A stretch of DNA of 64,000 nt, taken from contig NC_134470.1 in NCBI RefSeq assembly GCF_964194025.1, forward strand, positions 59,272,001 to 59,336,000, in the 5' to 3' direction. The first letter of the stretch is position 1. Every line of letters starts with the position of its first letter. Position numbers and translations under genes: made by a program. This DNA is from Convolutriloba macropyga (Eukaryota). Shown here piece after piece: positions 1 through 18,833 of the stretch. Under the pieces are notes generated by a model. The model was not told where the DNA came from and made no database searches. It saw nothing but the letters and a program-made list of their open reading frames with translations.

Positions 1-97
1 ACAACTAACATTTCCGAAACAAAACTTCTAACTTCAGTAACAAAATTTTGGTCACGTCAAAAGGAATCAGTTTTGATTTACTTTTGTACATTTACAG

Positions 98-227
98 GGA
101 ATTCTGTGTGAAAAAAGTGGTAAGAGAGGACAACTTCACAGCTCTGATTCAGAGAGAACACTTTGCAAGTCTCCAGTCACACATCATTGTGGACCTGATT
201 CGCAGACATAAACACGTCAATAACCAG
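98..227 (+). CDS. LZTR1: LZTR1 internal exon (end of first BACK domain); gene begins upstream of the window
   Basis: Acceptor tttacAG ends at 97 and donor GTattt starts at 228. Translation EFCVKKVVREDNFTALIQREHFASLQSHIIVDLIRRHKHVNNQ resembles recalled human LZTR1 [36 protein letters not shown]. Confidence 0.88.
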
Positions 228-362
228 GTATTTAATTGCTCTGAGACGAAATTTAGCAATTATAGTCCCATTTTATGCGATTTTTAATAATGCGATTTTT
301 TGTACTACCGACCTTTCGTCTTAGTTTTTTCGTCTAACCACCAATTTTTTGTCCGGCTTCAG

Positions 363-605
363 GTGCAATATGGGCCCCCATCGTCACCTCAAAGTTCCTG
401 GACGACTGCTGCTCAAGCTGCCACGGGTGATCAGCAATACACTGCACACTCGCCCACTTCACAACTGGCATCTTTTTCATTAGGTACAAATCAGCAGTCC
501 TACCAGCAACAGTGTACGATGCCACAACAGGATAATCACTTGGAAGAGGGCACTCTAGCTTTGGATCTGTTCAATTTACTCCAGATCAGCTATGCTCCTC
601 AACGG
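363..605 (+). CDS. LZTR1: LZTR1 exon (Q/S/T-rich linker plus start of BTB2)
   Basis: Acceptor cttcAG at 361-362 and donor GTaaac at 606, phase 0/0, compatible with both neighbouring exons. EEGTLALDLFNLL corresponds to LZTR1 IGTSLIQDMKAYL. Confidence 0.8.
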
Positions 606-822
606 GTAAACCTAATATCAATCTAAACAAATCAGCTTTCAGCTCTTTATCTTGCATATGTTCGCTGCGAAACTAGCTCGGATTACATTGTAAATGAAGC
701 GCAAACTTTTAAGGTTCACAAATAAATAAATGCGAATTTGCTCCTAGAGTTATCAATTGCATGACTAAACATTTCATTTCGCATAATATACAAACGCTAC
801 AGGACATCGGACCAAGGTTATC

Positions 823-2621
823 ATTGCTCTCAAACGAAGTGTGCAGCAATTATATTAGTCTCCTGTGGTCTTTTTTAATGCGACTAGCCGTAGTGATACA
901 AAACGCACTAACAATCTGTCGTTTTAGTTAATCGGTTGTTTTTATTACGAGATTTAAAAGCATTATTTTTGAGAAGCAATGAAATTTGTTCTCACATGCT
1001 AATATCTGGGACCACAGTAACTTAGGAATATAAATTGAATTTGCTACTGTGTTTCTTTCTCCATGCCTTTGAACAAACTGCATTATTTTAAGTAATATTT
1101 TCAAATCAAAGCAATTGTGGATTCATACAGGACCTAATAACAGAAAGATGAAACGGCAGATTAATGGGGCATCAATATTCCTTTTTTGTCAGAAACATAA
1201 TAACTCGTAATGATTCTTTCGCACAATCGAAGCGTCCTGTGAAAGTAGGCTAAATAAATAAAATTATACTGAAATTTTAAAAATTCCTAAAATTTTTGAA
1301 TAACTGAGCAAATAAGCTAAACTGTTTTAAGAGATGATTTGAAACAACATGTTTTTCTTGGAAAGCCCCGCATCAACGGAAAAATTGCCCTCTAATGCTT
1401 GTATTACCTATCACCCGATTTCCTCAGCTAGCATTCAATAATGTAACTCAGATGTGTCAACTGAGGATGACTCACTTTCATTCAAGGGAGCTTTTGCTAA
1501 TTATAGAATTTATGCAAATTCCTCTAATTAAAATTAAAACACCACAGAAAAACTTTTTAAATCATGTTCTTTCGTTGTTACTTTGGGACTACAAAGAGTT
1601 TTTGAAACCCTTGTGTATTGGCTTTTGAGTTATGTTGATGAGAATGTCACAACTGAAACTGAAAGTGTAGTGAAAACTCAGTTGATAGATGTAATTTTTT
1701 AATGTTGATTTGCTGCTTGTTTACATACGGCGTTTTTTATTGATTTTAAATTTTTGGTGGAGTTAATGTGTTGGTCCTTTTTTATGCCACACATTTGCAT
1801 GACCGATTTGACTTTTCGAGTGACTTTTGCGCGCCTGACTCTTTTCGTTTTGCGTGATCTAAATTTCTCTCATTCAAAGGTGTCAGAAGCTTAAATCAAT
1901 TGGCGACAGTTCACTACTACAATTCAAATGAAAAGTGCGCCAGGGTTAGTGTGATTTTTTATAGCTGCGATGCTGTAAGCTGAGCAGAGCTATATTGCGG
2001 TTTTTTGTTTCGTCGTCTGACGCTTTTTCGTTTCACATTTGTTCACAAAGCAAAGCTGAAAAGGTCAAATTTTCTGAATTACTTCTTCCTCTCACTAACG
2101 GCTTTTGTGCGCGTGACGTCATTTCGCACTCTCTATCAAAAGTTTTTTTGCGTTATTAGAGTTTGATCACAGGTGAAATGACTTTTGCACTTTAAAACTA
2201 AGTTTATTTCGAATTCATATAAGGTCAAAGCAACTCATATGTGTAATAAAGGTCTCTAGTGAAAAGGGCTTCTGCGCAATGATTTTTAACAAGCTTTATT
2301 AATTTTTCGCTGTGTTTTTTTCATACCTTTTTGAGCGGCGTCAAAAATTTTTTCAACTTATATCTGCATCTGTTTCTATCTCTATTATACGGCACTCAAG
2401 TCTATTCTTTCGCAGCTATTCCGGCAATTTGCCGGCTTTGTTTTTCACTTTAAATTTCATTAGTGATTATAGTGGTATATAATAACCTCTAATGACGCCC
2501 TTTGAAGAAACCTTTGCTATTGAAGTTATCCCTCCCCCGACTGAAGCAGGCTGCAATAGATTAGTGCTACCACTAGTCGTTCGAGAGCAATTCTTCCGAC
2601 GTTAGTCGGTTATGTTTATTT
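823..2621 (+). mobile_element. Helentron-associated non-autonomous element (HINE/DINE-1-like), family 1
   Basis: 5' subTIR attgctctcaaacga (823-837) followed by partial IR agcaat. 3' subTIR tcgttcgagagcaat (2577-2591), then hairpin ccgac-gtta-gtcgg (2596-2609) and a T-rich end. No TSD. Confidence 0.7.
1955..2445 (+). mobile_element. HINE family 2 element nested in a family 1 copy
   Basis: subTIRs atagctgcga (1961-1970) and tcgcagctat (2410-2419), 3' hairpin ccggcaa-t-ttgccgg (2421-2435). Inserted in a T-run; the empty site is visible in the paralogous copy at ~4665-4690. Confidence 0.78.
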
Positions 2622-4479
2622 CGTCTCGATCATTTTGAAATATGTATGGTTTTAAGTTAAGAGTTTTATTGCACCACTCTTCAATTCTTTTCCAGAGATC
2701 TACCGGGTATGTTTTTAATTTGTTTTTGCACATTCTTCTGATGACTTTTAGCTCTCGAAACGGGATAACAGCTACAGCTCGACGGGCAATAAATTGCAAT
2801 AGAGGCCCTGAGCTGTCTATTGTAGTATGTTAGGTGCTTTAAATACTAAGTGCTTTGCTGGGAATGTTGAGGTATATTTTTTGGTAATGTAAACTTAATG
2901 CAAAAGTTTTAGTGAATTTTGCCATTTTTAAAAAAATTTTTGAACATTTTGTTTGAGGTTTTTTGTTTATGGGCGGATAAACATTTTTCAGGGCTAGCAC
3001 ATTGGTTAACGTTCTCGAAGATATGGTTCAATAATTTTGAAGATTTTTTCCGTAAATTTAACTTTTTTCACCAAATTTTGCCATTTCAACTTTCGTGAAA
3101 TTTTTAGACCTTCTTCAAGTTCCTTGGTCTTTAAAAGTCAATGGATTGTTTTGGGCTTGAATGTGGTTTGCTGGATTGTTTTTGGCTTCAACTAATTTGT
3201 TTGTAAAGATTTTAGTATCCAAATCTGAACAAGTTTTCACTAATGTTTGCCATTTTGTTCACGTTTTGGTGAAATTTTTGTCCTCTTGAGTAAGGGCCAA
3301 TGAATCGTTTTATGGTCTTGGTTACTTGATAGTTTTTTGCGAATGCGAAGAAGTTTTGAAGACATTGATATCAGGAAGTTTGGCAGCTTTCCATCAAAGT
3401 TTGGCATATTTTCAAGTTCGTGTTTAGTGGCCAAGGTTTAAGATAGAAAAATAGATAGTTAAATAGTTAAAAACAGTTAAATAGTTTTGAAAATACTGAA
3501 ATTGGGAATTTTGGCAACCTTTCATTAAAATCTGCCACTTTTTGCAAGTTCTTTTCTGAAAATTCTAAAAATTTTTCTTTTTCGTGTTTGTCATATTTAG
3601 GGGCCAATGATGCTGTTTGCAAGCTTGTGATTGTGTTATTGAGTAAATTTTACCAGTATTATTTTGATGTTTGAGGACAGTTTTAGTGAAACAACTTAAT
3701 GAAGATATTAAAATCGGGAATTTTAGCTATTTTTTTAATCTTTAGGGCCAAAAAATGTTATTTGCCAGCTCGCGATTGTCAATGGGTATATTCATCTAGT
3801 ATAAAATTGTTTTTGACATTGGTTGCAGTCATTTATTGTTTTTGCTGGTAAAGTTGTTATTTATTGTTAATTTTGGCTAATTTATACTTTTTTTCGTTTT
3901 TGCCTCTATTGGTATTGATATGCGTAAAGATTTTTGCTTGTCTGCAAGTTAGTTATTTTGTGTATTTTAGCATCGGTTAATTGGTTTTCATGACATTAAT
4001 ATGAATAATTTAGCGAAGTTTGCAACGATCTTGATACTTTTGTCAAGTTTTTGAAATGTTTTAAGTCATTTTCAATTTGTCTGAGCTGTAGTCACCAATG
4101 AAGATTTTTTGAGCTTTTTGCTGCCTTTGAATGTAATTAATAGAATTACAACTTTAGTTTTGAGGTCATTGACATCAATCATCAAGAAGCTGTTTTGAAT
4201 TTCCTGTATTTTTGCTAGTTTTTTTGCATGTTTCTGCCCGTTTATCAAGCGTACTTTGTTTTCGGTTCCAATTTTTTTAACTTTCCCACTGAAATTTTAG
4301 ATTGAAAACCATGCTATTCAACACGGTTATCCTGAAAGTTATCATGAACGCCGTTATTGTTTTACTCCACTTCTGTGAAACTAAGGTTTCTTTGATTCAT
4401 ATTGTTCATTTGTTCTGCTGGTCAGATAGTGGATTGTTCGTTTTTAAGTGCTCCTGAACGAAGTTCATAGCAATTATTG

Positions 4480-4872
4480 TAAACGCGTGTGTCTTTTTTA
4501 TGCAAAATTTTTGCTTGACAATTTTGACTTTTCGAGTGACTTTTACGCCCTTGATTTTTTGTGTTTCACGTGATCTAAAATTCTCTCTCAATAACAATTT
4601 CAAGAAGCTGAACTCAATTGGTGGCAATTTAATTCTAAAAGTCAAATGAAAAAAGCGCCGAAACTGGTGCCATTTTTTACTTTAAATCTTAATAGTGGTA
4701 TATGTTAACCTCTAATGTGGTTATTTGAAGCCTACTATTGAACTTCTTAGTCCCATTTAGGCTCCCCCTCCCTCCCTCCCTCCCTCCGACTGAAGCAGTC
4801 TGCAATTTATTTGAGCTCCCACAAGTCGTTCGAGAGCAATTCTTCCGACGTTTAGTCGGTTATGTTTATTCA
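4480..4872 (+). mobile_element. HINE family 1, 3' portion
   Basis: Similar to 1790-1960 plus 2440-2620. Ends gtcgttcgagagcaattcttccgacgtttagtcggttatgtttatt. Confidence 0.7.
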
Positions 4873-7436
4873 ATTCTCATTTCAGGACTTGTCCTGTAAT
4901 GTTTTGTCAAGATTTTTGTTACGACCATATGACATCACAATCACTTCAAATCTGTTTTTTGTTCTTTCATTGATGCAAGTTCAATTCAATTTCCATGGCA
5001 CCCTTAGTGGAGTGAGATTTTTGTTTATTCGCTTGATTAAGTTTTTGGTCACACGTGACTTACCTCACTCTCAAAAATGGCTTCTGCATTCTGCTTCCTC
5101 TCAAATATGACTTCCTCAAGTTTTCGGATTTTTGAAGACTTTTGTCATTTTTAATGGTTCATATTTTTTTTGAAAATTTGTACCTTTTTTCTTTGTCTCT
5201 TTGACATTAGTGGTGAATGAAAAAGGTAGTGAAAATCAAATGATTTTCAATATATTAATATCTTGATTTTGAGCGTTTTTAAATTATGCCAATTTTTTCA
5301 TGTTTTTGAAATATTGCCTTTTGCCTGTTTTTGTTTTATACGACTGGGCATTATTTCTATTTCTCTGCTGATTAGTTGTTCTGTACGGCCTTTCCGTACA
5401 TTATTGCTCTTCTGCTGTTCTGTTCATTATTATGACGAGTTTGAACAAACTATTAGAGTTTCTGGAAAATTTTGTTTAATTTGACAGTTTGTACATGTTT
5501 TCCTGTAGTTGTTTCTTATTACTCACGCAAATGTTCTATTATCAATAAATCTACCTGTTCTTTTGCCCTGGTTTTTGGGATAGGAATTACTGATTTCATT
5601 ACTTTAACAACAAATTAACAAAAGTTTGAATGTTATGATGTTTTTCGCTAAATATGTTGAATTGATCTTGTGAGTCTGGTGAATAAGTCATTAATTTTCT
5701 CATGTTCCTTTCATTTCTCGACTTGTCCTTTCATGTTTTTCACAATCTAAAGCGCACCTGTAACGTCTAAATCCTTTCGATTGTGAGAACAACGAGAGGA
5801 AAAAGTGTAAAAACTGTCAAAAACTTAAACAATAAAAATTTTTCCGAGAACTTCAATTCCAAATTCACCACAATCATTAGACATGAAACAGTTGAAAAAA
5901 GTGGGAACAGATCTTTAAAAGATAACGCACCAGTAACATCTAAATTATGTAGTAAATTGAGCGAAAAAGAGATTGTAAAAGAGAAAAACAAGAATGTTTG
6001 AACCGTGATTTTTTTGAAAAAATTACGTTTAAAGTGGAGTGAGAAATTTGTATTTGAACTCATTCGATTTTTCAAGCAATTTTACACGTGCGCCAATTAC
6101 CTATAATTGCTGTTTTCTCCTTGATTTCGACAACTGGTTTCAAAATTTGATACATGTGTTCTTATAATGCATAGTTGAAAGTTTTATTTTAAGTAGAGTT
6201 AATGGTTCATATGCCTTAGACTCTGTTTCTTTTAATAAAATATCAGTGATTTTTGTTTTTCGTGCTCTTGCAATTTTTCTTGTTGTTATTTTTCCTTATG
6301 ATTGGTTTTACTTCTCTCTAATAAGACGTGTTACAAGTTATCCAATAGTTTCACTTGGTATCTAGAATTATAACGGTTTCTTCTCAACTTGTCCTAAAAC
6401 ATTCAATGTGTTATCTTGTAGTCTCACTAATGAATGTTTTGAGTTTATAGTTGGTGTTTTTCAAGACTTTGAAACTATTTATTTTCTAAAATCTAATAAG
6501 GAGTAACTGTCGTTAATTTGTCGGCTTAAACTTTTACGTTCTTTTTGTCTCTTTTCATCTAACTGAACATCTAATGGTTGATTTATGACCTCTAATTTTG
6601 TATGTTATGCTTTTGTTAACGGTTTTTGATGTAGTTTTGTGTTTTCACTTTGACGCCACTAATTTTTAAAAAGATTGCGTTTTTGCATTTTTTCCAGTTT
6701 CTGATATTGATTTCGACAAGTTTGTTCTATTGTATACTCATTATATGGACGCGCTGCGTTAATGTTTATGTAAAGTGTTGTTTTTTGATATTTTTATTGC
6801 ATTAGATTTTGAAAAAAAATTAACTGTTATTAGGATTTTTTATTTGTCTGTTTCTGCTCGTATAATATTAGTTTCATCTGCTTTGTTTGGTGGTCATAGT
6901 TTGATATTGCTTTAAAAAAGTAAAAATGTTGGTTGTCAGGTCCTTAGTTATTTCATTCCTTCGGATTGTAATTCAGGACTTGTCCTGCTATGTTTTTATA
7001 GTTCGTCCTACCTTTCTATCAAGTTTTTCCTTGTACTTAATCACGACTTTCTTTTATGAAATCTGACTTAGGATTTGAACTTCGCAATGTAGTGAATACG
7101 ATCAAAAGAAATGGGATAAACCGATAAAGGACTGTCATGAAGTCATGGTAAATTAGGTATGTCAGAGTTCGTTAGAGAGATTGCTAGCGGACGTTAGTAT
7201 TAAGCTTGATACCCTTCATTTTAGAAGCTGAATGAATTCTATTTTTTTAAGAATCTAACTAAAACGACACACCAAATTTCAACTCTTTTTGGTACTGAGA
7301 AATTTTTTTGTCAATTTATCTTTTTCTGTTTAAATCCGATTGGCGTCAAGGGGCTCAATGGTAGCTTTTTTCCAGCAACTCGCCTGCTATGTTATTTTCC
7401 TAACTGACCAAATATTTTGCATGTAATCAAATACAG

Positions 7437-7490
7437 GACATTTACTAACTTTTACTGGAAATTCATGACATTTACTAACTTTTACTGTAG
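7437..7490 (+). promoter_or_regulatory. Duplicated branch point and 3' splice site (30-bp period)
   Basis: gacatttactaacttttactg occurs twice, giving perfect TACTAAC at 7443-7449 and 7473-7479. Only the second copy ends in AG. Confidence 0.8.
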
Positions 7491-7752
7491 GTGAATATTG
7501 GACGAAAGGATGACACTGCCATTGCTAGCCGAAGCACAGAAGCTGGATCTCCTGGACAACAATCGAATTTGGATACATTACGAGTAAGTGTGGATGATGC
7601 ACCAAGTGGAACATTGTCTTTCGGAACTACCACTTGTCTTAATGGACCTGATGGCTTAGAAGAATTTGCAGATGTTCAGCTAACATTTGGAGCCAACGTG
7701 CTCATCTATGCACACAGGGCTGTTTTAGCTGCCAGAAGTCAATATTTTCTCA
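7491..7752 (+). CDS. LZTR1: LZTR1 exon (BTB2 N-terminal half)
   Basis: TACTAAC branch point plus ctgtAG acceptor at 7490, GTAAGT donor at 7753. EFADVQLTFGANVLIYAHRAVLAARSQYFL is a BTB motif (LZTR1 [28 protein letters not shown]). Confidence 0.92.
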
Positions 7753-8340
7753 GTAAGTTCTCTCATTGTGATACCCGAGCTACCGATAATGCGATTTGGA
7801 ACTGTTTCCTTTCCCCTCTTGTAGATTATGAACCTCCACGATCGATGTTTTCATCGGATAGTTCAATCTTTTATTGGAATCTACAAAACATTATCAACAC
7901 AAATACAAGCTTTTTTCAGTTACAAGTGGCAATAAAAAAAAATGGTTGTGTGGGAAAAGGAAATGGTGACTTTGTTTTTTTAATTGCTCTCAAACGAAGT
8001 TTGTAGCAATTGTATTAGTCCTGTCGGTCTTGTTTAATGCGATTTTCCGCTTGACCGATCTTTCGTCTGACGCTTTTGGACTTTTCGTCCTCAAAAACGG
8101 GACAAACAGGTTGCGCCCAGCGGGCATTAAGTGCTCTTAGAGCGTTTCAGCTCTGCTGGGCGGGGGGTAAAACTTCCTAGAAATAAATATGGCAAAGTAA
8201 CTGATTTTTATATATTCCGCAAACGAAAATATGGATTTTCAAAGTGGCTCATGAAAGTCAATGGAAGCTAACAGTCATCTTAATAGCAGAGCTCTAACTT
8301 TGCAATTGAAGTTTATCAGACTATTGGGTTGTATTACTTT

Positions 8341-11050
8341 TTAATTGCTCTCAAACGAAGTTTGTAGCAATTATATTTGTCCTGTCGGTCTTTTTTTAAT
8401 GCGATTTTTCGCTTGACCGATTTTTCGTCTGACGCTTTTGACTTTTCGTCCTCAAAAACGGGATGAACAGGTAGCGACCAGCGGGCATTAAGTGCTCTTA
8501 GAGCATTTCAGCTCAAACTGTTTTGGAGACTTATACTTATGGTGTGAAGGGCGGATCTTAGAGGTTGAAGACACCCCCACTGTTGAACCCCCCCGCTATT
8601 GTCCCCCACCCCCCCACCGCGCTCTTGCCCGCCCCAACCCACTGTTGCCCCCCATCAGCTCCCGGTGCAGCCCCCCTCCCCCTTGCTAGCTACTGACGAA
8701 CAACTGCTTGCTAAAAACGCAAATTTATACTATTTTGGAATTTTTTTCAAGCTTTTTGAAAATTGTTTACATTTTTAAATTTTTATCAGCCCTAGGTGTC
8801 AAGGATCCTCCTAATAGGTTACTGCATTGTTTCCAGTGGTAATGGAATGTTTTTAATAGCCGCACAGCGATAGCTGAGGCTATTATTGGCCTTCTCTTGG
8901 TTTTTTTATTCGTCGTCGCGATTTTTGTTACGACCATATGACGTCACAACCACTTCAAAATCTGCTTTTTGTTCATTGGTTCATGCAATTTCAACTGAAA
9001 TGCATGTGTGACGTCATTTTTTGCTCGTAGTAGAGCGAGTTTTTTCGTTCTTTCACGTGATTAAATTTTTGGTCACACTTGACTTACCTCAATCTCAAAT
9101 ATGACTTCCTCAGTTTGATATTGACTTTTATTTACTTTAATTCAAAGATATAAGGTCAAATGGGTATGTGTCACTCTAAATGAAGGTTATTTGAGAGCAG
9201 CTAGTAGAGGCAGCAGAAACTTATACAGATTTTTAATCAAAATATATAACAAATCAGCCTTCAATGAAAAGACGAATTTTTTGGTCTGTCTTTTTTACTG
9301 TTTTTTAAGAGTGCAGATCTACGAAGCTATTGCGGCTATTTTCTGGCAACCCTCCAGCGATGTTCAAGATTTTAACATCACGAATTTAAGCATTTTTTTG
9401 ACAAAGTGTGCAATTTTTTTCAAATTCTTGGACACTATTTTCCCTTGTTGAGGTTTTTCCAGTCCCAGGGGCCTGAAAACATCCTAGGGGGTTTATTAAT
9501 AGGTTAATGACGAATTTTTTTGGCCTTGGCATAGTTTGTCAACTTCTTAATGTCGCAAATTTGAGCAATTTTTTGATAAAACTTGCTCTTTTTCAATTTC
9601 TTTTTTCATCTTTTTCCGTTTTTTTTAGGCTTTTTTCAGTCTCAAGAACCAAGGAACCTCCTCTGGGATTTGGAAATAGGTTATTTATAATTTCTAATTT
9701 AAATGCAATGTCTTGCAAGATTTTAACATCACGAATTTTAAAATTTTTTCCTACAAAACTTGCAATTTTTTTAATTTTATTGTCATTATTCAGGTTTTTT
9801 GAGCATCAAGAATCAGAAAACCTCCGTTATGATTTGATTATAAGTTACTAAAAAATTTTTGTTCGTCATTGGTTATTTTTCAACTTTTTAATCATAAGTT
9901 TTAAGAATTTGTTTTATAAAACTTTGCAACTTTGAATTTTTTTTTCATTGTTTAGGTTTCTCTAGCCTCAAGAGCCACGGAACTTCCTCTAGGGTTTGAT
10001 AATATTTTACTGCATAATTTATAGATGTAATGGAATGTTCTTCAAGATTTTAATAACAAGAATTTTAACTATGTTTTTCAAATATTTGCAATTTTTTCAT
10101 GTTTTTGAATTTTTTCCGGCAGCAAAGGCCCTGTAACCTCCAAGATTTGATATTAAGCGGCTGCATAGTTTCTAGAATTAATGGGATGGTGATCAATATT
10201 TTTATGACTCCATTTTTGTAATTTTTGGATCAAATTTAAATTTTTTTCGAATTTTTTGGAAAATTTTTATGTACCAAGTGTATGGATCTTTATGAGCCTG
10301 TGACAATATTTCGGGCTTGGGATAGGGATACCGAATAGCCTCTCAAGACAATGAAATGGTTCTTAAAATTTTATTATCTTGAATTTTAGCAAGATTTTGT
10401 TGAAATTATTAAAATTTCGTCCTTTTCTGAGTATAACGACTATTATTGGCCAACGAAACTTTTCAAGACTCGGCGACGGGTTACTTGACAGAAATTTTAA
10501 AACAAAAAATTGTTTTGAACTTTTTTTACCGTGAATTTGAAAACTTTTTTAATTTTGCCTTTTTCAGTTTTTTCTATCAAGGCTAGAAAATTTATTTACT
10601 ATCAAGGCTAGAAAATTTCTGTTCCCGTTGTATCTCTCTCCATTTCTTTTTCCCGTTTTATCTCTCTCTCTCTCTCTCTTTCCTTCTTTTTGTTGAGGCC
10701 GCACTTCAGCGGCGGTTATGTGGCGTAATGTCATCATCTCTGATCCTCATTAACAATGAGTTATTGTAGAATAGTTTTTTATCATAAATGACCTAACAGT
10801 CACTTTTTAGGAAATCTTTATTAATTGCTCTCGAAATCAATTTGTAGCAAATATATTAATCCTGTTTGTCTCTTTTATGCAATGTTTTGCTTGGTTGTTT
10901 TTTCGTCTCACCAATTTGTTTTTCGTCTTCAGAAACGGGATAAAAAGGTAGCACCCAGAGGTCACTAAACCGTGGCTAGCTGCTGACCAAGGCAACCGCT
11001 CGCCGGTCGTTTGAGAGCAATTCGCCCGACGTTATTCGGTTATGTTTATG
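8341..11050 (+). mobile_element. Long HINE family 1 copy with central degenerate ~150-bp tandem array (preceded by a truncated 5' end at ~7981-8160)
   Basis: 5' subTIR at 8343, C-rich tract, repeated 'aagattttaacatcacgaattttagcaattttt' units, 3' subTIR 11007-11022 and hairpin 11026-11039. Colinear with 13146-15090. An extra 5' end occurs at ~10823. Confidence 0.72.
8852..9364 (+). mobile_element. HINE family 2 element nested in the 8341-11050 copy
   Basis: subTIRs aatagccgca (8855-8864) and tgcggctatt (9331-9340), then hairpin ctgg...ccag. Interrupts the gaatgtttttcaagatt motif that is intact at ~14020-14035. Confidence 0.72.
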
Positions 11051-12330
11051 TAATTGGGCTCTTTATGCAGTTTTTGCAAATTCTTTGCTCGCAAAATCTA
11101 TACGAATTTCAAGACAATTTTTCGTCTGCTCGGGCGTTTCTGAAAGAGTAAGTATTTCTGTATTATTTCTGCGAAGCTGTAAGCTAAGCGGAGCTATATT
11201 GCGGTGCTCTTGGTTTTCTATGACTCGAAGAGGAAGAGGAGTATTGGTTTTTTAAGGTTTTTTTTAATCGGAAGTACTATTCGTTCGGACGGCGTTTTGA
11301 CCTAAAAAAGAAAGAGAAAATTTGTTGTGATTCAATCAGTGAATGGCTTTTTGACATTGAAAAGTGTTTTTTTTACAGAATGCCGCATATAGATAACCAT
11401 TTTTAGCCGTCTCTTCGTCCAATCGGCCCACTTCATTCGCTTATAATTTAGTTTTTTGTAGGTATAATTTTAAATAGAAACTGTATTAATATGTGAACCT
11501 CTGAAATTGATACCACAAACGTGATTTTGATATTCTAATAATGCGTTTTGAATTCCAAATGAGCACATATTCACTATTTTTATCTTTTTTAGCTTTTTTA
11601 AATTAAGTTTTTTTTGGATCTTAAAGCGGATTTTTTTTTTTCATTTTTCACAATTCGGTGCATATGGCAATTTACCTTATGTGAGGTATTTTTGTTTTGT
11701 AGCAAGGTACCCATGTTTGGCCTAGTTTCTTTTGTCTAATTTTTCTCAGTTTTTTTGGGTTTAATTACTTGAAAATCTTTTTGTGCGCTTTTGGAAAAGC
11801 GCCCAAAAAGCAATTTTGAAAAGGAATTGACAATTATATTGTAAAATATTTTTGTTTCCAATCTTTGAACCATGTTTCTACATTGTAATCTATACAGGAA
11901 GATGGCTGTCTATTTTTATACTAAATAAGGAAATGTAATTGTTCTTCTCTTCTTTTTCAGTTTAATTTTTAGCTTTCAAAAATCAATAACAAGTCTTTTC
12001 GTTTTTCATGTATTTTCGTATCTGTCCTCATTCTCTGCATTCTAGCTTGTATCAGTCTATCATTTTCCTGAGACCTATGGTTCTAATCAGCTCTGCTTTT
12101 ATTGGTTTTTAAAAATAGTGTTTTAAGCATTTTTTGGGTTCTTTAGATTTATACTTCGTCTAACTCTACTCCTTTTGTTTGCACTCTTTATAATTTTTTC
12201 TCTGTCTAATTCAGTAGCAAAAAGCGCAGGTGTTAAGCAAAGAAACTTTAAGTGAAAGCTATTGGTGTAAAAAAACGAAAGCAATTCAGCTACGTGATAA
12301 ATCTAAAAAGCTGCAGAACTAATACCCATT

Positions 12331-15158
12331 ATTAATAGCCGCCCTCATCTTCTCAGCCGACTTTTATAGTGCTTATATTTATTACATTTCAATGAATATT
12401 CATGATTTTTGAAATCAAATTGGATTACTGATTTTGGTAACACCGGAACAGGAAGTGGAGCGGAAAAGCGAGTGGTGTTGTGGCGTGAAATTGTTTGCTC
12501 GAATTTTAAAGTAGAGTGAGAAAATGGCGTTTGAACGAATATTCGCTTTTCAGCTAGTGGTTTTTTGATCATATGCGGCATTTTGTTATCAATTTTTACT
12601 GTTTTTCCTTTTTTTTAAACTTATCTTTTTCCGGATGGTTTTCGCAAACCATTCATATTCCATCCCACGTCTAGTTTTTTGTTTAATCGATGAAATGTTT
12701 TTGAATTGTAAGCCAGGACACATCCTGCTACATTTTTTTACTTCGTCGAACAAAAATTGGTTTCATTTGAGCTCATTGTGCCGCTGTTTCAACATTTTGC
12801 GAAACATCTTTTTGACTTCTCTGGTCGAGTTTCGCTCATCTCTCATTCTGTTCAAAATGCTTTTATACAGGAGTTGCTCAACAAAACATTTCAAAATGAA
12901 CAGAATCAGTATATAAAAAACGAAATCAGAAATAGAAACGGGATAAACCCAGCAAAGCCCAAGTTTAGATGCCCATTACTTGCACTTTGTTCTTATAAGT
13001 CTTAGTTACCATCCCTCATGCCTATTGGTATTGATACCGGCTTTTGTATCCTCTCACTATGAAACAGGAGTATGTTCAACTACGAAATGACATCAATGTA
13101 GTCTGCACTTTTAAACTGTTTTTTTTTTCCTTTTTTCTCGTTATTTTATTGCTCTCAAACGTGGTTTGTGGTAATTATATTAGTCTTCTCGGTCTTTTTT
13201 TAATGCGATTTTTCGCTTGACCGATTTTTTGTAGGACGCTTGTGACTTTTCGTCCTCAAAAACGGGATAAACAGGTACCGCCCAGCGGGCATTAAGAGCT
13301 CTTAGAGCCTGCCTTTCAGCTCTGTTTCAGCTAAAACTGTTTTGGAGACTTATACTTCTGCTGTGAAGGGCGGTTCTTAGAGTTTGAAGACACCCCCACT
13401 GTTGACCCTCCTCCACTATTGCCCCCAACCGCGCTGTTCCCCCAACACCACTTTTGCTCACCCCCACTCACCTCCCTCCCAATCAGATCCCTGATGCACC
13501 CCCCTCCCCCGTGGCTACGTTCGAACAACCGATTGCTAAAAACACGCAATTTTTTCGAGCTTTTTGAAAATTTTTGTTATTTTTTGAGATCTTTCAGCCC
13601 TGGGTGTCAAGAAACTTCCTCATGGGTTTTATAGTAGGTTGCTGCATAGTTTCGAGTGATAGTGGAATGGTTTCAACATTTTAACATCACGAATTTTAGC
13701 AATTTTTTTGACAAAACGTGCAAATCTTTTCAATTTTTTGAACCTTTATTTTTCATTATTCAGTTTTCATTTTTCTCTCTAGACGCAGGGGCCAGAAAAC
13801 GTCCTTTGGGGTTTGATAATAAATTACTGAAAAATTTTTATTCGCCATGGTATAGCTTTCAATTTTTTAACATGACAAATTTTAGCGATTTTTTCGATCA
13901 ATTTTTTTTCAAGTTTTTCAAAACTTTTTGTCGATTTGCAGGTTTCTCAAGCCTCCAAAGCCGTTTAACTTCCTCTAGGGATTCACAATAGGTTACTGTA
14001 TAGTTTTTAAATGTAATGGAATGTTTTTCAAGATTTGAACATCACGAATTTTAGCATTTTTTAAAATAAAACTTGCATTTTTTTGACATTTATTTTCATT
14101 ATTCGAGTTTTTGAGCACTATAGAAAATATCCGTTAGGGTTTGATAATAAGCCACTGGAAAATCGTTTTTGGCCATGGATTAGTTTTCAACTTTATTTAT
14201 CTCAATTTTTAGCAGTTTTTTATGCTACTTGCATTTTTTTTGAAGTTTTTTTGTCATTTTTTTAGGGTTCTGCAGCCTCAAGAGCCACATATTGTCCTCC
14301 AGGGTTTGATTTTCGGTTACTGCATAGCTTCTTGATGTAATGAAATGTTTTTCAAGATTTTAATATCACCAATTTTTTTTAAAAAAATGCAATATTTTCA
14401 AGTTTTGAATCGTTTTAAATTTTCTCATTTTCTCCGGCACCAGGGTCCTAGGGACCTCCTCCAGGGTTTGATGATAAGCTGTCACATAATTTTTGAATTT
14501 AACGGAATGGTTATCAATATTTTAACGACTCCAGCGTTAGCAATTTTTTGATAAAATTTAATTTTTCAAATTTTCGGAAAATTATTATGTTCCAAGTTTA
14601 TGGATCTTTATGTGCCATTGAAACTATTTAAATTTCGAAATAGGGATACTGGATAGTCTCTTGAGACACTGAAGTTGTTTTGAAGATTTTATTATCTTGA
14701 ATTATAGCAAAATTTGCGATTGTTTTCAAAATTTTTGAAGTTTTTAAAAAATTTTTGTCCTTTTCTGAGTTTAACGATCATTACTGGCCACTGAAGCTTT
14801 TCAAGTCTTGCAGATGGATTACCTGACATCCAGAGACAAAAAATGGTTTTAAAGATTTTCATTGCGAAATGTGGAAGCTCTTCTTTTAAATTGTGCAATT
14901 TTTTGCAAATTTTTAAAATATCAGTTTTTTATCAGTTGACTTCTATACTAACAAAGCTAGAAAACTATTAGTTGCACAGTGGAACCAAACTATAGCCAGC
15001 CTCACTAAACCGTGGCTAGCTACTGACGAAGCCAACCGCTCGCCAGTCGTTGGAGATCAATTCGCCCGACGTTAGTCGGTAATGTATCGATTCTCTCAAT
15101 CACAAGCGTGGTTATGGAATCAACGGCGGCTATTTTCCAGCAATCTGCCGGTTTTATT
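12331..15158 (+). mobile_element. HINE family 2-type element enclosing a family 1 copy
   Basis: subTIRs aatagccgcc (12334-12343) and ggcggctatt (15125-15134), followed by imperfect hairpin ccagcaatctgccgg and a T-rich end. Confidence 0.55.
13146..15090 (+). mobile_element. Long HINE family 1 copy with central ~150-bp tandem array
   Basis: 5' subTIR attgctctcaaacg (13148-13161), 3' subTIR 15047-15062, hairpin ccgacgttagtcgg (15066-15079). Paralogous to 8341-11050. Confidence 0.75.
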
Positions 15159-15538
15159 AATAATAATTAATAATTGTGGTTTCTGCGTAATCGCAGTGGA
15201 ACAGCATTAGGCCTACAGTAGCCTGTTTTCAGCTGCCCTTTTGCTTATTCCCCACATTTCAGACTGATCTTTTCATGAGCAGCATTGCTCTTTTTTTGGT
15301 GACTTTACTTTATAGGGTATATGTCAATTAGGTTTTTGAAGTAATTTAAAGTTTATTTGGTCTGGTGGCTATTGGTTTCACAGAACAAATCTACCCAGAA
15401 ATGCTCGTATTATTTGAGAGAAAACTGAATTTAATCTCTTTCTTTTCTATCTACGTTTAAACACTGATCGAGGCTTTATCTAAGTCCGCTCTTTCAATCA
15501 AATCTAAATTGAATTAACAGGTGTTTTCTTTCTTTAAG

Positions 15539-15901
15539 GTCTGTTTGACTTCAATTCCGCGTCCTCCAAGCAGCAGTCTAATTCTCAAACAACCAACACT
15601 CCAACTGAAGTAATACCGAGCTCCAACAATAATCAGACGTATTTTCACAGTAGTAAAGTTTCGCCGTCTGTAGCATTAACTCCGATTGCTTTGGGCTGTG
15701 ACGAAAATGGTTCTCTGAAAATGGCACGTGTGAAAATAGACGATATTGTTGGCACCAGGCAAGCTCTGGAATCGTTCCTGAGATTTGTCTACTCTGGCCA
15801 TACGCTGATGCCACCCGAGGACTCTCTTTTCCTCCTTCGGACACCCTCCTTTTATGGACTGACCAATGATAGGCTCGCCCATATTTGTCAGAAGAACCTA
15901 G
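15539..15901 (+). CDS. LZTR1: LZTR1 exon (BTB2 C-terminal half)
   Basis: Acceptor tttaAG at 15538; the phase-1 join gives YFL-S-LFDF and the frame is open throughout. RQALESFLRFVYSGHTLMPPEDSLFL...YGLTNDRLAHICQKNL matches LZTR1 [26 protein letters not shown]...YGFYNNRLQAYCKQNL. Donor GTaaac at 15902. Confidence 0.92.
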
Positions 15902-16193
15902 GTAAACCACCAATTTGTCACAGTTTGGGATCTCTCTGATACCGCAGTTACAATCTTTTTGCCGTCACATAGCAAATCATGTGCCTGGTAGGGGGAGGGG
16001 GTGGGTGGTGGTTGTCAATGATAGCATACCAACTAACCCACTAACAAAACATTTAGCAGTGATGGAGTTGACTCGAAAATAAGAATAAGTGGAACTATAC
16101 GTACAACCATTCTATGGCACTCAACTTTTTCCATTTTATTTTATTTATTTGTTGAGGCATCATACTACCTAAAGTAGAATCAATTGAATTTTG

Positions 16194-16356
16194 GGATCTT
16201 TTCCGTTTGTGCCCCCCCCCAGCTTAGTGGGTGCATATTATTTGCAACCCCCAGATGCACGTGCAATATTTTTACATAATGATTTACTATGTAATGACAC
16301 GTGCTCTGTAACTGGGGGGAGCATAACGTACTGGGGGGCACAAACGGAAAAGATCC
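16194..16356. mobile_element. MITE family A (Merlin-like), in the last LZTR1 intron
   Basis: 24-bp TIR GGATCTTTTCCGTTTGTGCCCCCC at both ends. Perfect 8-bp TSD gaattttg (16186-16193 and 16357-16364). Confidence 0.93.
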
Positions 16357-16396
16357 GAATTTTGCCTTTTTTGAAAATAGGTTGTTTGTTTTGTAG

Positions 16397-16665
16397 AAAC
16401 AAATATCACAACTGAGACTGTTCTCCGTGTCTACATAACAGTGGACTCGATTCCCCACTACAGTGATTTCAGAGACAGGTGTCTGCACTTCATTGTAGAC
16501 CATTTTGTGGAGTTGGGCCAATCAGAGGACAGAAGACTCCTCAGCCAATCACAGCTGTGTGAGGTGTGGGAAGCGTATTGTGTGAAGAAAATGAGCATGT
16601 CAGCGCAGCCTGTTTATCACCATCCTTATTTCCATCAGTACCAACAACAGCAAAATCAGAATTAG
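16397..16665 (+). CDS. LZTR1: LZTR1 terminal coding exon (BACK2 plus Q/H-rich tail)
   Basis: Acceptor ttgtAG at 16396; the phase-1 join gives E-TNITTETVLRVY...FRDRCLHFIVDHF...RLLSQSQL, matching LZTR1 EMNVTVQNVLQIL...MKRHCLHIIVHQF...RSLSQQLL. Stop TAG at 16663-16665. Confidence 0.92.
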
Positions 16666-17825
16666 ATGTTTTGGATTGCTGATCAGAGTCAATACAAAAA
16701 AAAACGTTTTTGAATCATGAGTCTGTACACCAATAATATTAGAATTATGGAATTATGGACAAAAAGTTGGATCAGGACGGCAGAGCTTTGAAGTCGAATA
16801 TATGTGAACGGCAGCCTCTCAGATTTCTTTCAAAGGACTGAGTTCTCGTGGCTTATGAATTGTTTAAGTGAAAAAGTAGCGATCATTATTAAGCCTAGAA
16901 CTTATTTTTCAAATGTACATTAATATTTAATATTGGTTGCATGAGAGGAACGGAAATATGAGCTAATGGTGCGATCAATAACAGATGCTATTGAAGAAGC
17001 TAGGGGATGCAACTTTTGAAGGAATATTGGAAATATGAAGTTCCTTCGAGATGAGTTGGTGACGTGACAATATTTAGCAGTTCGAGCAAGGTTTTGGGTG
17101 GGACAACTATCGTTGATCTTAGATTTTTTATTGAAAAAGAAACCCTCAAGAGCAATCAGTAATGCCCTTTGATTTTGATCAATATTTTTTCCACTCATAG
17201 CATAAAATCAAGAATTGATCTCTTCATTTTGCCGTTCGGAGAAGCCTCATTTAAATTCTCATCTGATCGACACGTGACTTGGCAATGTGTGGACTGGAGA
17301 GGAAAATTTCTATTTTAATGGAAGCTATTTGAGAGCAGTAAAGCATTCGGCTGCCTTTGTACAAACTATAACTATTGCAAGGATAAGTGATACGTGATGC
17401 TGCTAAACCACCTGAAACTGATATCAATTATTCTCGCTTTACGGGTCAAATCTTATTTGGAAGATGAATTTTTTCTTATAAATAAACACGTTCTTCTGAG
17501 AAGAATAATACTATTTTTCTGTTTTCCTTGCAATTTCAAAATATTAAGTTGCGTTGTAGATTAGTTTGATGTATAAATTGAAATCATGCTTTTAATTTAA
17601 TTTACAGCATCTTTGTTGTTGAATTTCGAAAAACTTTTCAATATTATAAATCCAATGAGAAAAAAAATGTAAACTCCAAGTACGAGCGCGCAATTTTTTA
17701 AGAACTTCGACACAAACAAACAAACTGACAAATTTTCAATTTGTCAATGCCAACTAACAACAGCTGCAATTGGGTGAGAGCGTTCTGTTAATTTCTAAAA
17801 GCCGCAAAATAGGTGCACCTCTCAT

Positions 17826-18290
17826 TAATTGCTCTCAGACAAAGTTTGTAGCAATTCTGTTAGTCATGCGGTTTGTTATGCGATTATACGTTGGGCTGAT
17901 TTTTGATCAGAACCTTTTGACTGTTCGCTCTCAAAAACGGGGGATAATCAGAAAACGTACGGTGGGGATTAAGTTCTCAGAGCTTTTAGATTCTTTAGAC
18001 TAATCTAAAGTATCCGATTCAGCGAAACTGTGTTGGGTCATATGGCGTAGAAGCAGGTTCTAAAGAATTGACCACCACTTCACGCCCCTCCTTCAATTCG
18101 TTCCCTCCCCTACATGAGCCTCAGTTCACTCCCATCCCCACTCCCTTCATTTAGTTCCAACCGTAACAGCGTGCTTGACCCCTCTCGTCGCCTCCCGCGA
18201 CGACTCTTCAGTTAGGCTAAAGCTAGCCTGCCTAAACGTAGCTAGCTACTGACGAAGCCAACGCTCGCCATTTGTTTGAGAGCAAATTTT
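17826..18290 (+). mobile_element. Short HINE family 1 copy without the central array
   Basis: aattgctctcagacaa ... ttgtttgagagcaaatt termini. Shares internal blocks (ctcaaaaacggg, gctagctactgacgaagccaa) with the long copies. Confidence 0.68.
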
Positions 18291-18833
18291 CAGCCGCCCT
18301 AAGTTGATTGTTTGTTAGTTTCGTTAAAAGAAATAACATTTTAAAACTCTTAATTGATTATAAACGTTAGTGGCGGTGCAGCAGTGTTTTAACCTGATAA
18401 CGTTCGTCGGATTCAAAAATTATCTGTTGCAAGTGTACTTTTTTCAAAACAAATGTTAGTTCCTGCAACTTTTTCATTATGTGGTTAACTTTACAAAGAA
18501 GCTCTAGAGTTTTCTAAGAACCTCCATAATTTTCTTTAAAGATTGTAACTAGAATCTTTATAACCAAATGTCATAACGGTTTTCTCTAAATAGTAACGAA
18601 AGCCTATCAGTGGCAGGCTGATGTATTTCAGGAAAACCAATTTTATATGAAAAAGTAACACATTTAGTTCAAGAGTTTTGCGGTTTTAACCAACAGACGT
18701 TAACAGCAGTTTTTGTGAAGATCGGCTTTTTAATTTCCTAACGAAATGAAAACTTCTATATTGTGGTTTTGCAAGATTAAAGTTTTAAATTTTTTTTGAC
18801 AATGCTCAAAATTTTGTTTTACAATTTAAGATA

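Follow-up and report, generated by a model that had tools for sequence, protein, structure and literature searches.

Transposons can supply splice signals within introns that already exist, as antisense Alu copies do by providing a pyrimidine tract and a 3′ splice site. Transposon-created introns, or introners, including Helitron-derived ones, have also been documented (Gozashti et al., 2022, PMC9860276; Gozashti et al., 2025, PMC12130899). HINEs are non-autonomous Helentrons, insertion into TT without target-site duplication being part of their definition, and they carry subterminal inverted repeats, an inverted repeat nested at the 5′ end, a 3′ stem-loop and boundary T-strings of variable number that are part of the element itself (Thomas et al., 2014, PMC4067079). 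Here we describe a short intron in the genome of Convolutriloba macropyga, almost entirely made of HINE sequence, which looked like an animal case of a rolling-circle element making an intron; three relatives show otherwise. Our data argue strongly that it is an old intron into whose 5′ end a HINE inserted and which was then probably collapsed by deletion.

The DNA analysed (hereafter the window) is a stretch of 64,000 nucleotides, G000:C3:59272001-59336000, of the 1.18 Gb genome of this animal, and positions given without a contig are those of the window. An LZTR1-like gene lies on its + strand, with further exon pieces upstream of the window in L031 and L032. The parts of the gene that concern us are the following.

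98-227, 363-605, 7491-7752, about 15727-15900 and about 16393-16566, + strand: LZTR1-like exon pieces in the window, from translations and homology.
98-227, + strand: coding exon for the end of the first BTB-BACK unit, translation EFCVKK...RRHKHVNNQ, from homology to LZTR1-type proteins, with an orthologous exon in relatives B and D.
228-362, + strand: GT..AG intron of 135 nt, phase 0, flanked by the open in-frame pieces 98-227 and 363-605.
363-605, + strand: coding exon of 81 codons (243 nt, phase 0-0), a Q/S/T/P-rich linker, whose start VQ..SPQSS and LEEGTLALDLF are common to relatives B, D and C.
606-7490, + strand: following intron of 6.9 kb, with donor GTAAAC (its GT at 606-607) and no counterpart in B, C and D.
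7491-7752, + strand: coding exon that completes the linker and opens the second BTB domain, from exon homology and comparison with relatives.

A 100-residue exon piece matches 72 proteins, including a fish protein of 787 aa with PF24981 (Beta-prop_ATRN-LZTR1) among its precomputed Pfam hits, and tblastn places the exons for the propeller end, BTB1, BACK1, BTB2 and BACK2 in that order over about 35 kb. Homology to LZTR1 proteins, together with this predicted order of a Kelch beta-propeller followed by two BTB-BACK units, indicates an LZTR1 architecture; the label LZTR1-like is based on homology and domain order. The first base of exon 98-227 finishes an AGG codon started in the preceding exon. 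Every intron seen in the gene is kilobases long, except the 135-nt intron at 228-362.

Both junctions of this intron read CAG|GT, as the original prediction had stated. Read through without splicing, the sequence has an in-frame stop at 285-287, and a 227 to 363 splice holds the frame in phase 0. The public sequencing runs that hold the locus are four DNA runs only, from two samples, and they contain two alleles of 213-354. A second allele is supplied by L068, a contig of 410 kb in a different assembly of this species, about 97% identical. No intron-less or spliced allele was found among the four DNA runs (two samples) and L068, the HINE-bearing intron being present in both haplotypes, in the two samples and in that contig. 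Compared with the window, L068 shows no difference in exon 98-227, two substitutions in exon 363-605 (one synonymous, one I/V) and four substitutions plus two indels in the intron; indels are thus confined to the intron, with none in the two exons. In substitutions this gives 2 differences per 373 exon nucleotides versus 4 per 135 intron nucleotides, with a one-sided P of about 0.05 by a binomial estimate. The predicted 227/363 junction is based on the reading frame, conservation in relatives and the lower polymorphism of the exons, and the relatives give stronger support than the polymorphism contrast. Within the intron, position 324 is polymorphic (G/T) in three of the four DNA runs and L068, and one of the alleles loses the AG at 323-324, the only other AG in the 3′ half.

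The repeat that fills the intron is abundant: a 33-mer of the family 5′ end has 5094 genomic matches at no more than one mismatch, versus 0 for a control. Complete copies measure 270-470 bp. They begin with T[T/G/A][T/A]TT-AATTGCTCTCAAACGA, the partner AGCAATT following after a few bases, and they end with TCGTTTGAGAGCAATT, then the palindrome CCGACGTTAGTCGG, then TTATGTT; as read from the sequence letters, the palindrome CCGACGTTAGTCGG directly follows the 3′ subterminal repeat, which matches the 3′ stem-loop expected of a HINE. In a sample of 100 flanks collected without bias, the T-string starts 5 nt ahead of AATTGC, with T in about 95% of copies, while the base upstream of it is random. 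Both subterminal repeats were found in 15 of 30 sampled copies, 225-600 nt apart (1,359 nt in one copy). For about half of the 30 sampled 5′ ends, the 3′ end of the element is missing within 1.4 kb, and the end-points of profile alignments are widely scattered; 3′-truncated copies are therefore common. Judged by this anatomy, which agrees with the published description (Thomas et al., 2014, PMC4067079), the Helentron/HINE-type label proposed at the outset is supported. The family also forms regular tandem arrays, at G000:C2:11683951-11691901 (period about 1 kb), G000:C1:28003220-28012065 (period 1.9 kb) and G000:C15:2890759-2893488 (period 0.8-1.1 kb), which resemble the satellite-like arrays borne by Helentron derivatives of the Pacific oyster (PMC7492417). 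Over the gene and its surroundings (L031, L032 and window 1-18400), all 19 HINE profile hits are in sense orientation relative to the gene (+ strand).

The copy inside the intron can be delimited as follows.

229-354, + strand: diverged, 3′-truncated HINE copy in sense orientation, from blastn, nhmmer and a shuffle test.

A blastn search of the genome with the 135-nt intron matched more than 40 copies at 72-89% identity, the matches beginning at query 1-6 or at an internal block and fading at about 107-127. With a profile built from 22 copies, nhmmer aligned window 221-354 to profile positions 32-165 (78.7 bits, E=2.5e-23). In a shuffle test on local alignments, the head of the intron (228-323) scored 88 versus 18.2±2.8, a value reached by none of 1000 shuffles, and the score of the tail (324-362), which is owed to GTTTTTTCGTCT at 324-335, was reached by 12 of 1000; the last 23 nt of the intron are marginal (41/1000), and the first 58 nt of exon 363-605 showed no similarity to the HINE. 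The earlier claim that the intron is almost wholly a HINE 5′ end thus holds for 229-354, and the claim that similarity runs up to the AG and stops there is not supported at that precision, as the profile alignment ends at 354 and what follows is marginal.

The fragment retains the T-string, then the 5′ subterminal inverted repeat at 234-249, the short inverted repeat AGCAATT that pairs with it at 255-261, and internal sequence of ~90 nt. Neither in 228-362 nor in the exon after it is there a 3′ subterminal repeat or a 3′ hairpin. It therefore has one of the two element termini and is a fragment, no mobile unit. The first T of the HINE is window 229, the T of the donor GT, or 230 if 229 is the host half of the TT target; it had been placed 3 bp past the GT, a position that the unbiased flanks correct. 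In a first, query-biased set of copies a GT appeared upstream of the element, which suggested that the whole donor GT might be part of it; the unbiased flanks conserve the T only, and this possibility was rejected. With the T-string starting at 229, a single host G is followed in the intron by about 126 nt of HINE, and the origin of the last 8 nt is uncertain. Its body is certainly derived from the family, and the last 8-20 nt, acceptor included, are not assignable to the HINE.

Whether the HINE made this intron or entered it is answered by relatives of C. macropyga. Relatives B, C and D are three related species with genomic contigs in public assemblies, found by word searches with ORFs around the exons, and the junctions compare as follows.

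Relative B (L069): exon end ...DLIRRHKQ, CAT AAA CAA|GTGAGT; intron 10178-11395, 1218 nt; acceptor TTTTAG|GTGCAATCAG.
Relative D (L074): exon end CAA|GTTGGT; intron 3521-3907, 387 nt; acceptor TTAAAG|GTGCAATCGG.
Relative C (L075): upstream exon off the 665-nt contig; intron >72 nt; acceptor CACTAG|GTACAATTCG.
C. macropyga: CAG|GTATTT; intron 228-362, 135 nt; acceptor CTTCAG|GTGCAATATG.

The downstream exon starts with GTGCAAT or GTACAAT in relatives B, D and C. The peptide starts are VQSVAPASPQSS in B and D, VQFVAPSSPQ in C and VQYGPPSSPQSS in C. macropyga, LEEGTLALDLF is found in all four, and in B, C and D the VQ... coding piece is in frame with the second BTB domain. Because the peptide starts and LEEGTLALDLF are common to the four species, we regard 363-605 as a genuine conserved coding exon. 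The opposite view, that 228-362 is not an intron of a functional transcript, either because 363-605 is no real exon or because the gene copy is dead, could draw on the absence of a Pfam match to 363-605 and of a counterpart in fish LZTR1. It is very improbable, given that B, C and D have the homologous piece in frame, its start and LEEGTLALDLF included, that all examined exons are open and that polymorphism is lower in exons than in the intron. Two other origins for 363-605 were considered and rejected: derivation from the rest of the HINE, as it has no similarity to the full-length profile or consensus, and birth as a new cassette exon through a HINE acceptor, as B, C and D have homologous coding sequence.

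Since B, C and D all have an intron before the VQ exon, the acceptor position is ancestral. The HINE family is absent from their loci, with 0 nhmmer hits at E<=1 in the sequence available (three overlapping stretches of 20 kb, and 8.3, 0.8 and 0.7 kb). The relatives having the intron without the HINE, the HINE is a lineage-specific arrival and the intron is not transposon-made. The position of the intron in orthologues, which the original prediction had singled out as informative, thus refutes intron creation, one of the two origins that it had offered. There is no intron at the 227/363 site in fish LZTR1 (L034), where the nearest one lies in the linker in phase 1, nor in flatworm LZTR1 (L035); the intron is therefore old only within the clade of these four species. 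Four other homologues lie on contigs without introns across the matching span, and a scan of JGI metagenomes for further relatives found none. The relatives are distant, their exon DNA being about 70-74% identical and their introns unalignable with that of C. macropyga or with one another.

The introner-like alternative deserves to be set out, as much of what is seen in C. macropyga by itself would suit it. The HINE would have entered a continuous exon and been spliced out, with a donor made of a host G and the element T and with an element-borne acceptor. An intron made of nearly nothing but element sequence, CAG|GT at both junctions, a first element T that is the T of the donor GT, the lack of an intron at this site in fish and flatworm, and the existence of Helitron-type introners in other eukaryotes (PMC12130899) are all in keeping with it. 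However, B, C and D have the intron with the same acceptor and without the HINE, the copy is 3′-truncated and hence has no element 3′ junction, and the family consensus has no AG. Genome-wide sampling points the same way: among 40 AGG|T junctions between host and HINE, an upstream flank that is open, GC-richer and coding in appearance was seen in 1-2 at most, none matches Pfam and the two best candidates are likewise without a Pfam hit; relative to 20 GAG|T controls, the 40 junctions show a slight excess in GC and ORFs that is explained by nested HINE ends and a microsatellite. We consider creation of this intron by the HINE to be highly unlikely.

We therefore return to an old intron overwritten by a HINE, a reading built on the identity and truncation of the HINE copy, its absence from the relatives' loci and the conserved acceptor position. 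A spliceosomal intron would already have been present in the common ancestor of C. macropyga and relatives B, C and D. After the split, a HINE in sense orientation would have inserted at the extreme 5′ end of this intron, its T-string starting at the T of the current donor GT. At least one deletion would then have removed the 3′ part of the HINE and nearly all of the original intron, the simplest such deletion running from inside the HINE (after ...TTTTGTCC) to 0-8 nt before the old acceptor. The remnant would be nearly all HINE (about 126 nt), with 1 host G in front of it and no more than 8 nt of possibly original sequence between it and the unchanged acceptor. Collapse by deletion, rather than an insertion that was truncated from the outset, is our inference from this arrangement. 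An old intron can shed all of its original sequence and still hold its position.

Gene structure differs between these species at other places as well. The intron at 605|606 is missing from all three relatives, and that at L032 540|541 from B and D. Two introns around the BTB1 exon are missing in relative C (L033, L075) compared with C. macropyga, and relative B has one intron inside BTB1 that is absent from C. macropyga. The coding span measures about 35 kb in C. macropyga versus about 9.5 kb in B, which has no HINE at the locus, a contrast in line with HINEs having strongly reshaped the C. macropyga genome. The 6.9-kb intron also varies within the species: at window ~1887, L068 carries about 7.4 kb of extra DNA (L068:11622-19021), from another haplotype or individual, with ORFs matching PF00078 (RVT_1) and PF00665 (rve) and a second copy of window 581-1609. 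This extra DNA is a structural polymorphism inside the gene.

At the donor side, the comparison with relatives reveals a change in the exon.

216-227, + strand: last 12 nt of exon 98-227, GTC AAT AAC CAG, missing from the exons of B and D by junction comparison.

The exon ends CAT AAA CAC GTC AAT AAC CAG|GT in C. macropyga and CAT AAA CAA|GT in B and D, and is thus 12 nt longer in C. macropyga. Two routes to these nucleotides appear about equally plausible from the sequences at hand: either the donor moved downstream, or the exon gained four codons and the HINE landed at +2/+3 of a donor that was already there. Both routes leave HINE letters at donor positions +2/+3 to +6. If the donor was relocated, which would be a variant of the old-intron history, the ancestral donor was CA(A/C)|GT, 12 nt upstream (215|216), and the HINE landed 13-14 nt into the intron, where the junction CAG|G+T became a new in-frame donor, the old one decaying to GTCAAT, which now codes V-N. 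B and D do end in CAT AAA CAA followed by GTGAGT or GTTGGT at the place matching GTCAAT, and GTCAAT retains the G, T, A and T of GTGAGT. An insertion of four codons before the conserved ...CA(A/G)|GT boundary fits equally, however, and the intron-poor homologue P0013 reads RRKHKSV, so that the ancestor may already have coded a V behind HK[H/S], which seems to favour the codon-insertion route slightly. The comparison is made on 6-9 nucleotides, and, Helentrons inserting into TT, the T could be the host T of a GT that already existed. Relocation is a serious candidate to which we give somewhat less than even weight.

At the acceptor side, the features are these.

334-338, + strand: CTAAC, branch-point-like, 25 nt before the acceptor and in HINE-derived sequence, read from the letters; the family consensus is CTGAC.
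339-362, + strand: pyrimidine-rich tract and acceptor CAG, of which 339-354 fall in the profile alignment and the last 8 nt, GGCTTCAG, outside it.
10819-11050, + strand: short complete HINE copy of the same family that carries CAG where the consensus is CAA, and with which the intron tail had originally been compared.

The family 5′ end had been proposed as a ready-made pyrimidine tract plus AG, which the consensus contradicts: at the place matching the AG it reads CAA, the exact 22-mer occurring in 2847 copies with CAA versus 108 with CAG. The HINE family is thus one transition short of an acceptor, not a ready-made one. Of the second origin that had been offered, an old intron with an element-borne 3′ splice site, the old intron stands, as does a location of CTAAC and the tract in HINE sequence; the element-borne splice site itself does not, since the acceptor has not moved and its AG is not assignable to the element. 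Because its position relative to the exon is unchanged, the acceptor never shifted onto an element AG. The letters of donor positions +2/+3 to +6, of CTAAC and of the pyrimidine tract are element-derived, and they would serve today as splice signals; on the strength of these letters, a HINE origin is probable for both the branch site and the pyrimidine tract in use.

A second donor of this gene also has a HINE beside it. The preceding intron runs from L032 540|541 to window 97|98 (about 9.6 kb, phase 2), its exon ending ...CTTAG and the intron starting GTTGG, and it has no counterpart in B and D; a fish intron lies 1 nt from the L032 540|541 site, in phase 0 versus phase 2. From +6 on, the preceding intron runs into an old, diverged and nearly full-length HINE of the same family (L032 546-914 in profile register; from intron start to the end of the HINE, G000:C3:59262541-59262914). 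Read depth shows the last 97 nt of the preceding intron to be single-copy, so it is no whole-element introner either. In about 38 kb with 12 sense 5′ ends and six donors, two ends lie within 6 nt of a donor, for which we estimate a chance probability of about 6e-5. A third HINE 5′ fragment, at window 812-885 (817-885), is preceded by a donor-like CCAAG|G and lies 210 nt into the 6.9-kb intron, where there is no known exon end.

These arrangements raise the idea that new or relocated 5′ splice sites have arisen repeatedly from HINE 5′ ends in the C. macropyga genome. If so, a T-string beside ...AG|G would give a usable GT and donors would migrate to HINE junctions, which would account for the 12-nt extension, for the HINE near the preceding donor and for the third copy after AAG|GT 590 nt downstream. 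Genome-wide, no preference for a donor-like AGG|T was seen (AGG|T 155, GAG|T 217, GGA|T 81), and a target preference for AGG|T is ruled out by these counts together with the random upstream base in the 100 flanks. We hold a recurrent role of HINE ends as donors to be unlikely; the donor-adjacent ends in two consecutive introns are the sole part of this work that might lead to something new.

How the intron at 228-362 relates to the systems described before can now be stated. The family resembles HINEs/DINE-1 (Thomas et al., 2014, PMC4067079) in its subterminal inverted repeats of about 16 nt, the short inverted repeat nested in the 5′ one, the 3′ stem-loop, the variable T-strings, its non-coding nature, its thousands of copies and its tandem arrays; the copy in the intron differs in retaining the 5′ third of the element only. 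With introners (Gozashti et al., 2022, PMC9860276; Gozashti et al., 2025, PMC12130899) the intron shares a sequence that is nearly all high-copy element and a donor that is completed where the element begins; the known introner sources include rolling-circle elements (PMC12130899). The differences are that the C. macropyga intron predates the element, that the copy is a fragment, that the consensus has no acceptor AG and that recurrent whole-element introns were not seen among the 40 sampled AGG|T junctions. Introners are absent from relatives that lack the element, whereas B, C and D have this intron; introner elements supply both splice sites, whereas here the donor T is element-derived, the acceptor sits at the ancestral boundary and the consensus reads CAA. 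Because the intron is older than the element, the defining test of an introner goes against it. An introner-like look in one genome can hide an old intron secondarily overwritten by a repeat, which is a caution for introner scans based on a single genome.

There is also a likeness to antisense Alu copies: in both, a T-rich part of a repeat gives letters of splice signals upstream of an acceptor, here those of the branch site and the pyrimidine tract. The C. macropyga intron differs in that no new exon arose and the acceptor is unmoved, the repeat replacing the old signals after the intron collapsed. The overwriting of the interior and of the splice-signal letters of an existing intron by a repeat is a known kind of event, for which the repeat here is a HINE.
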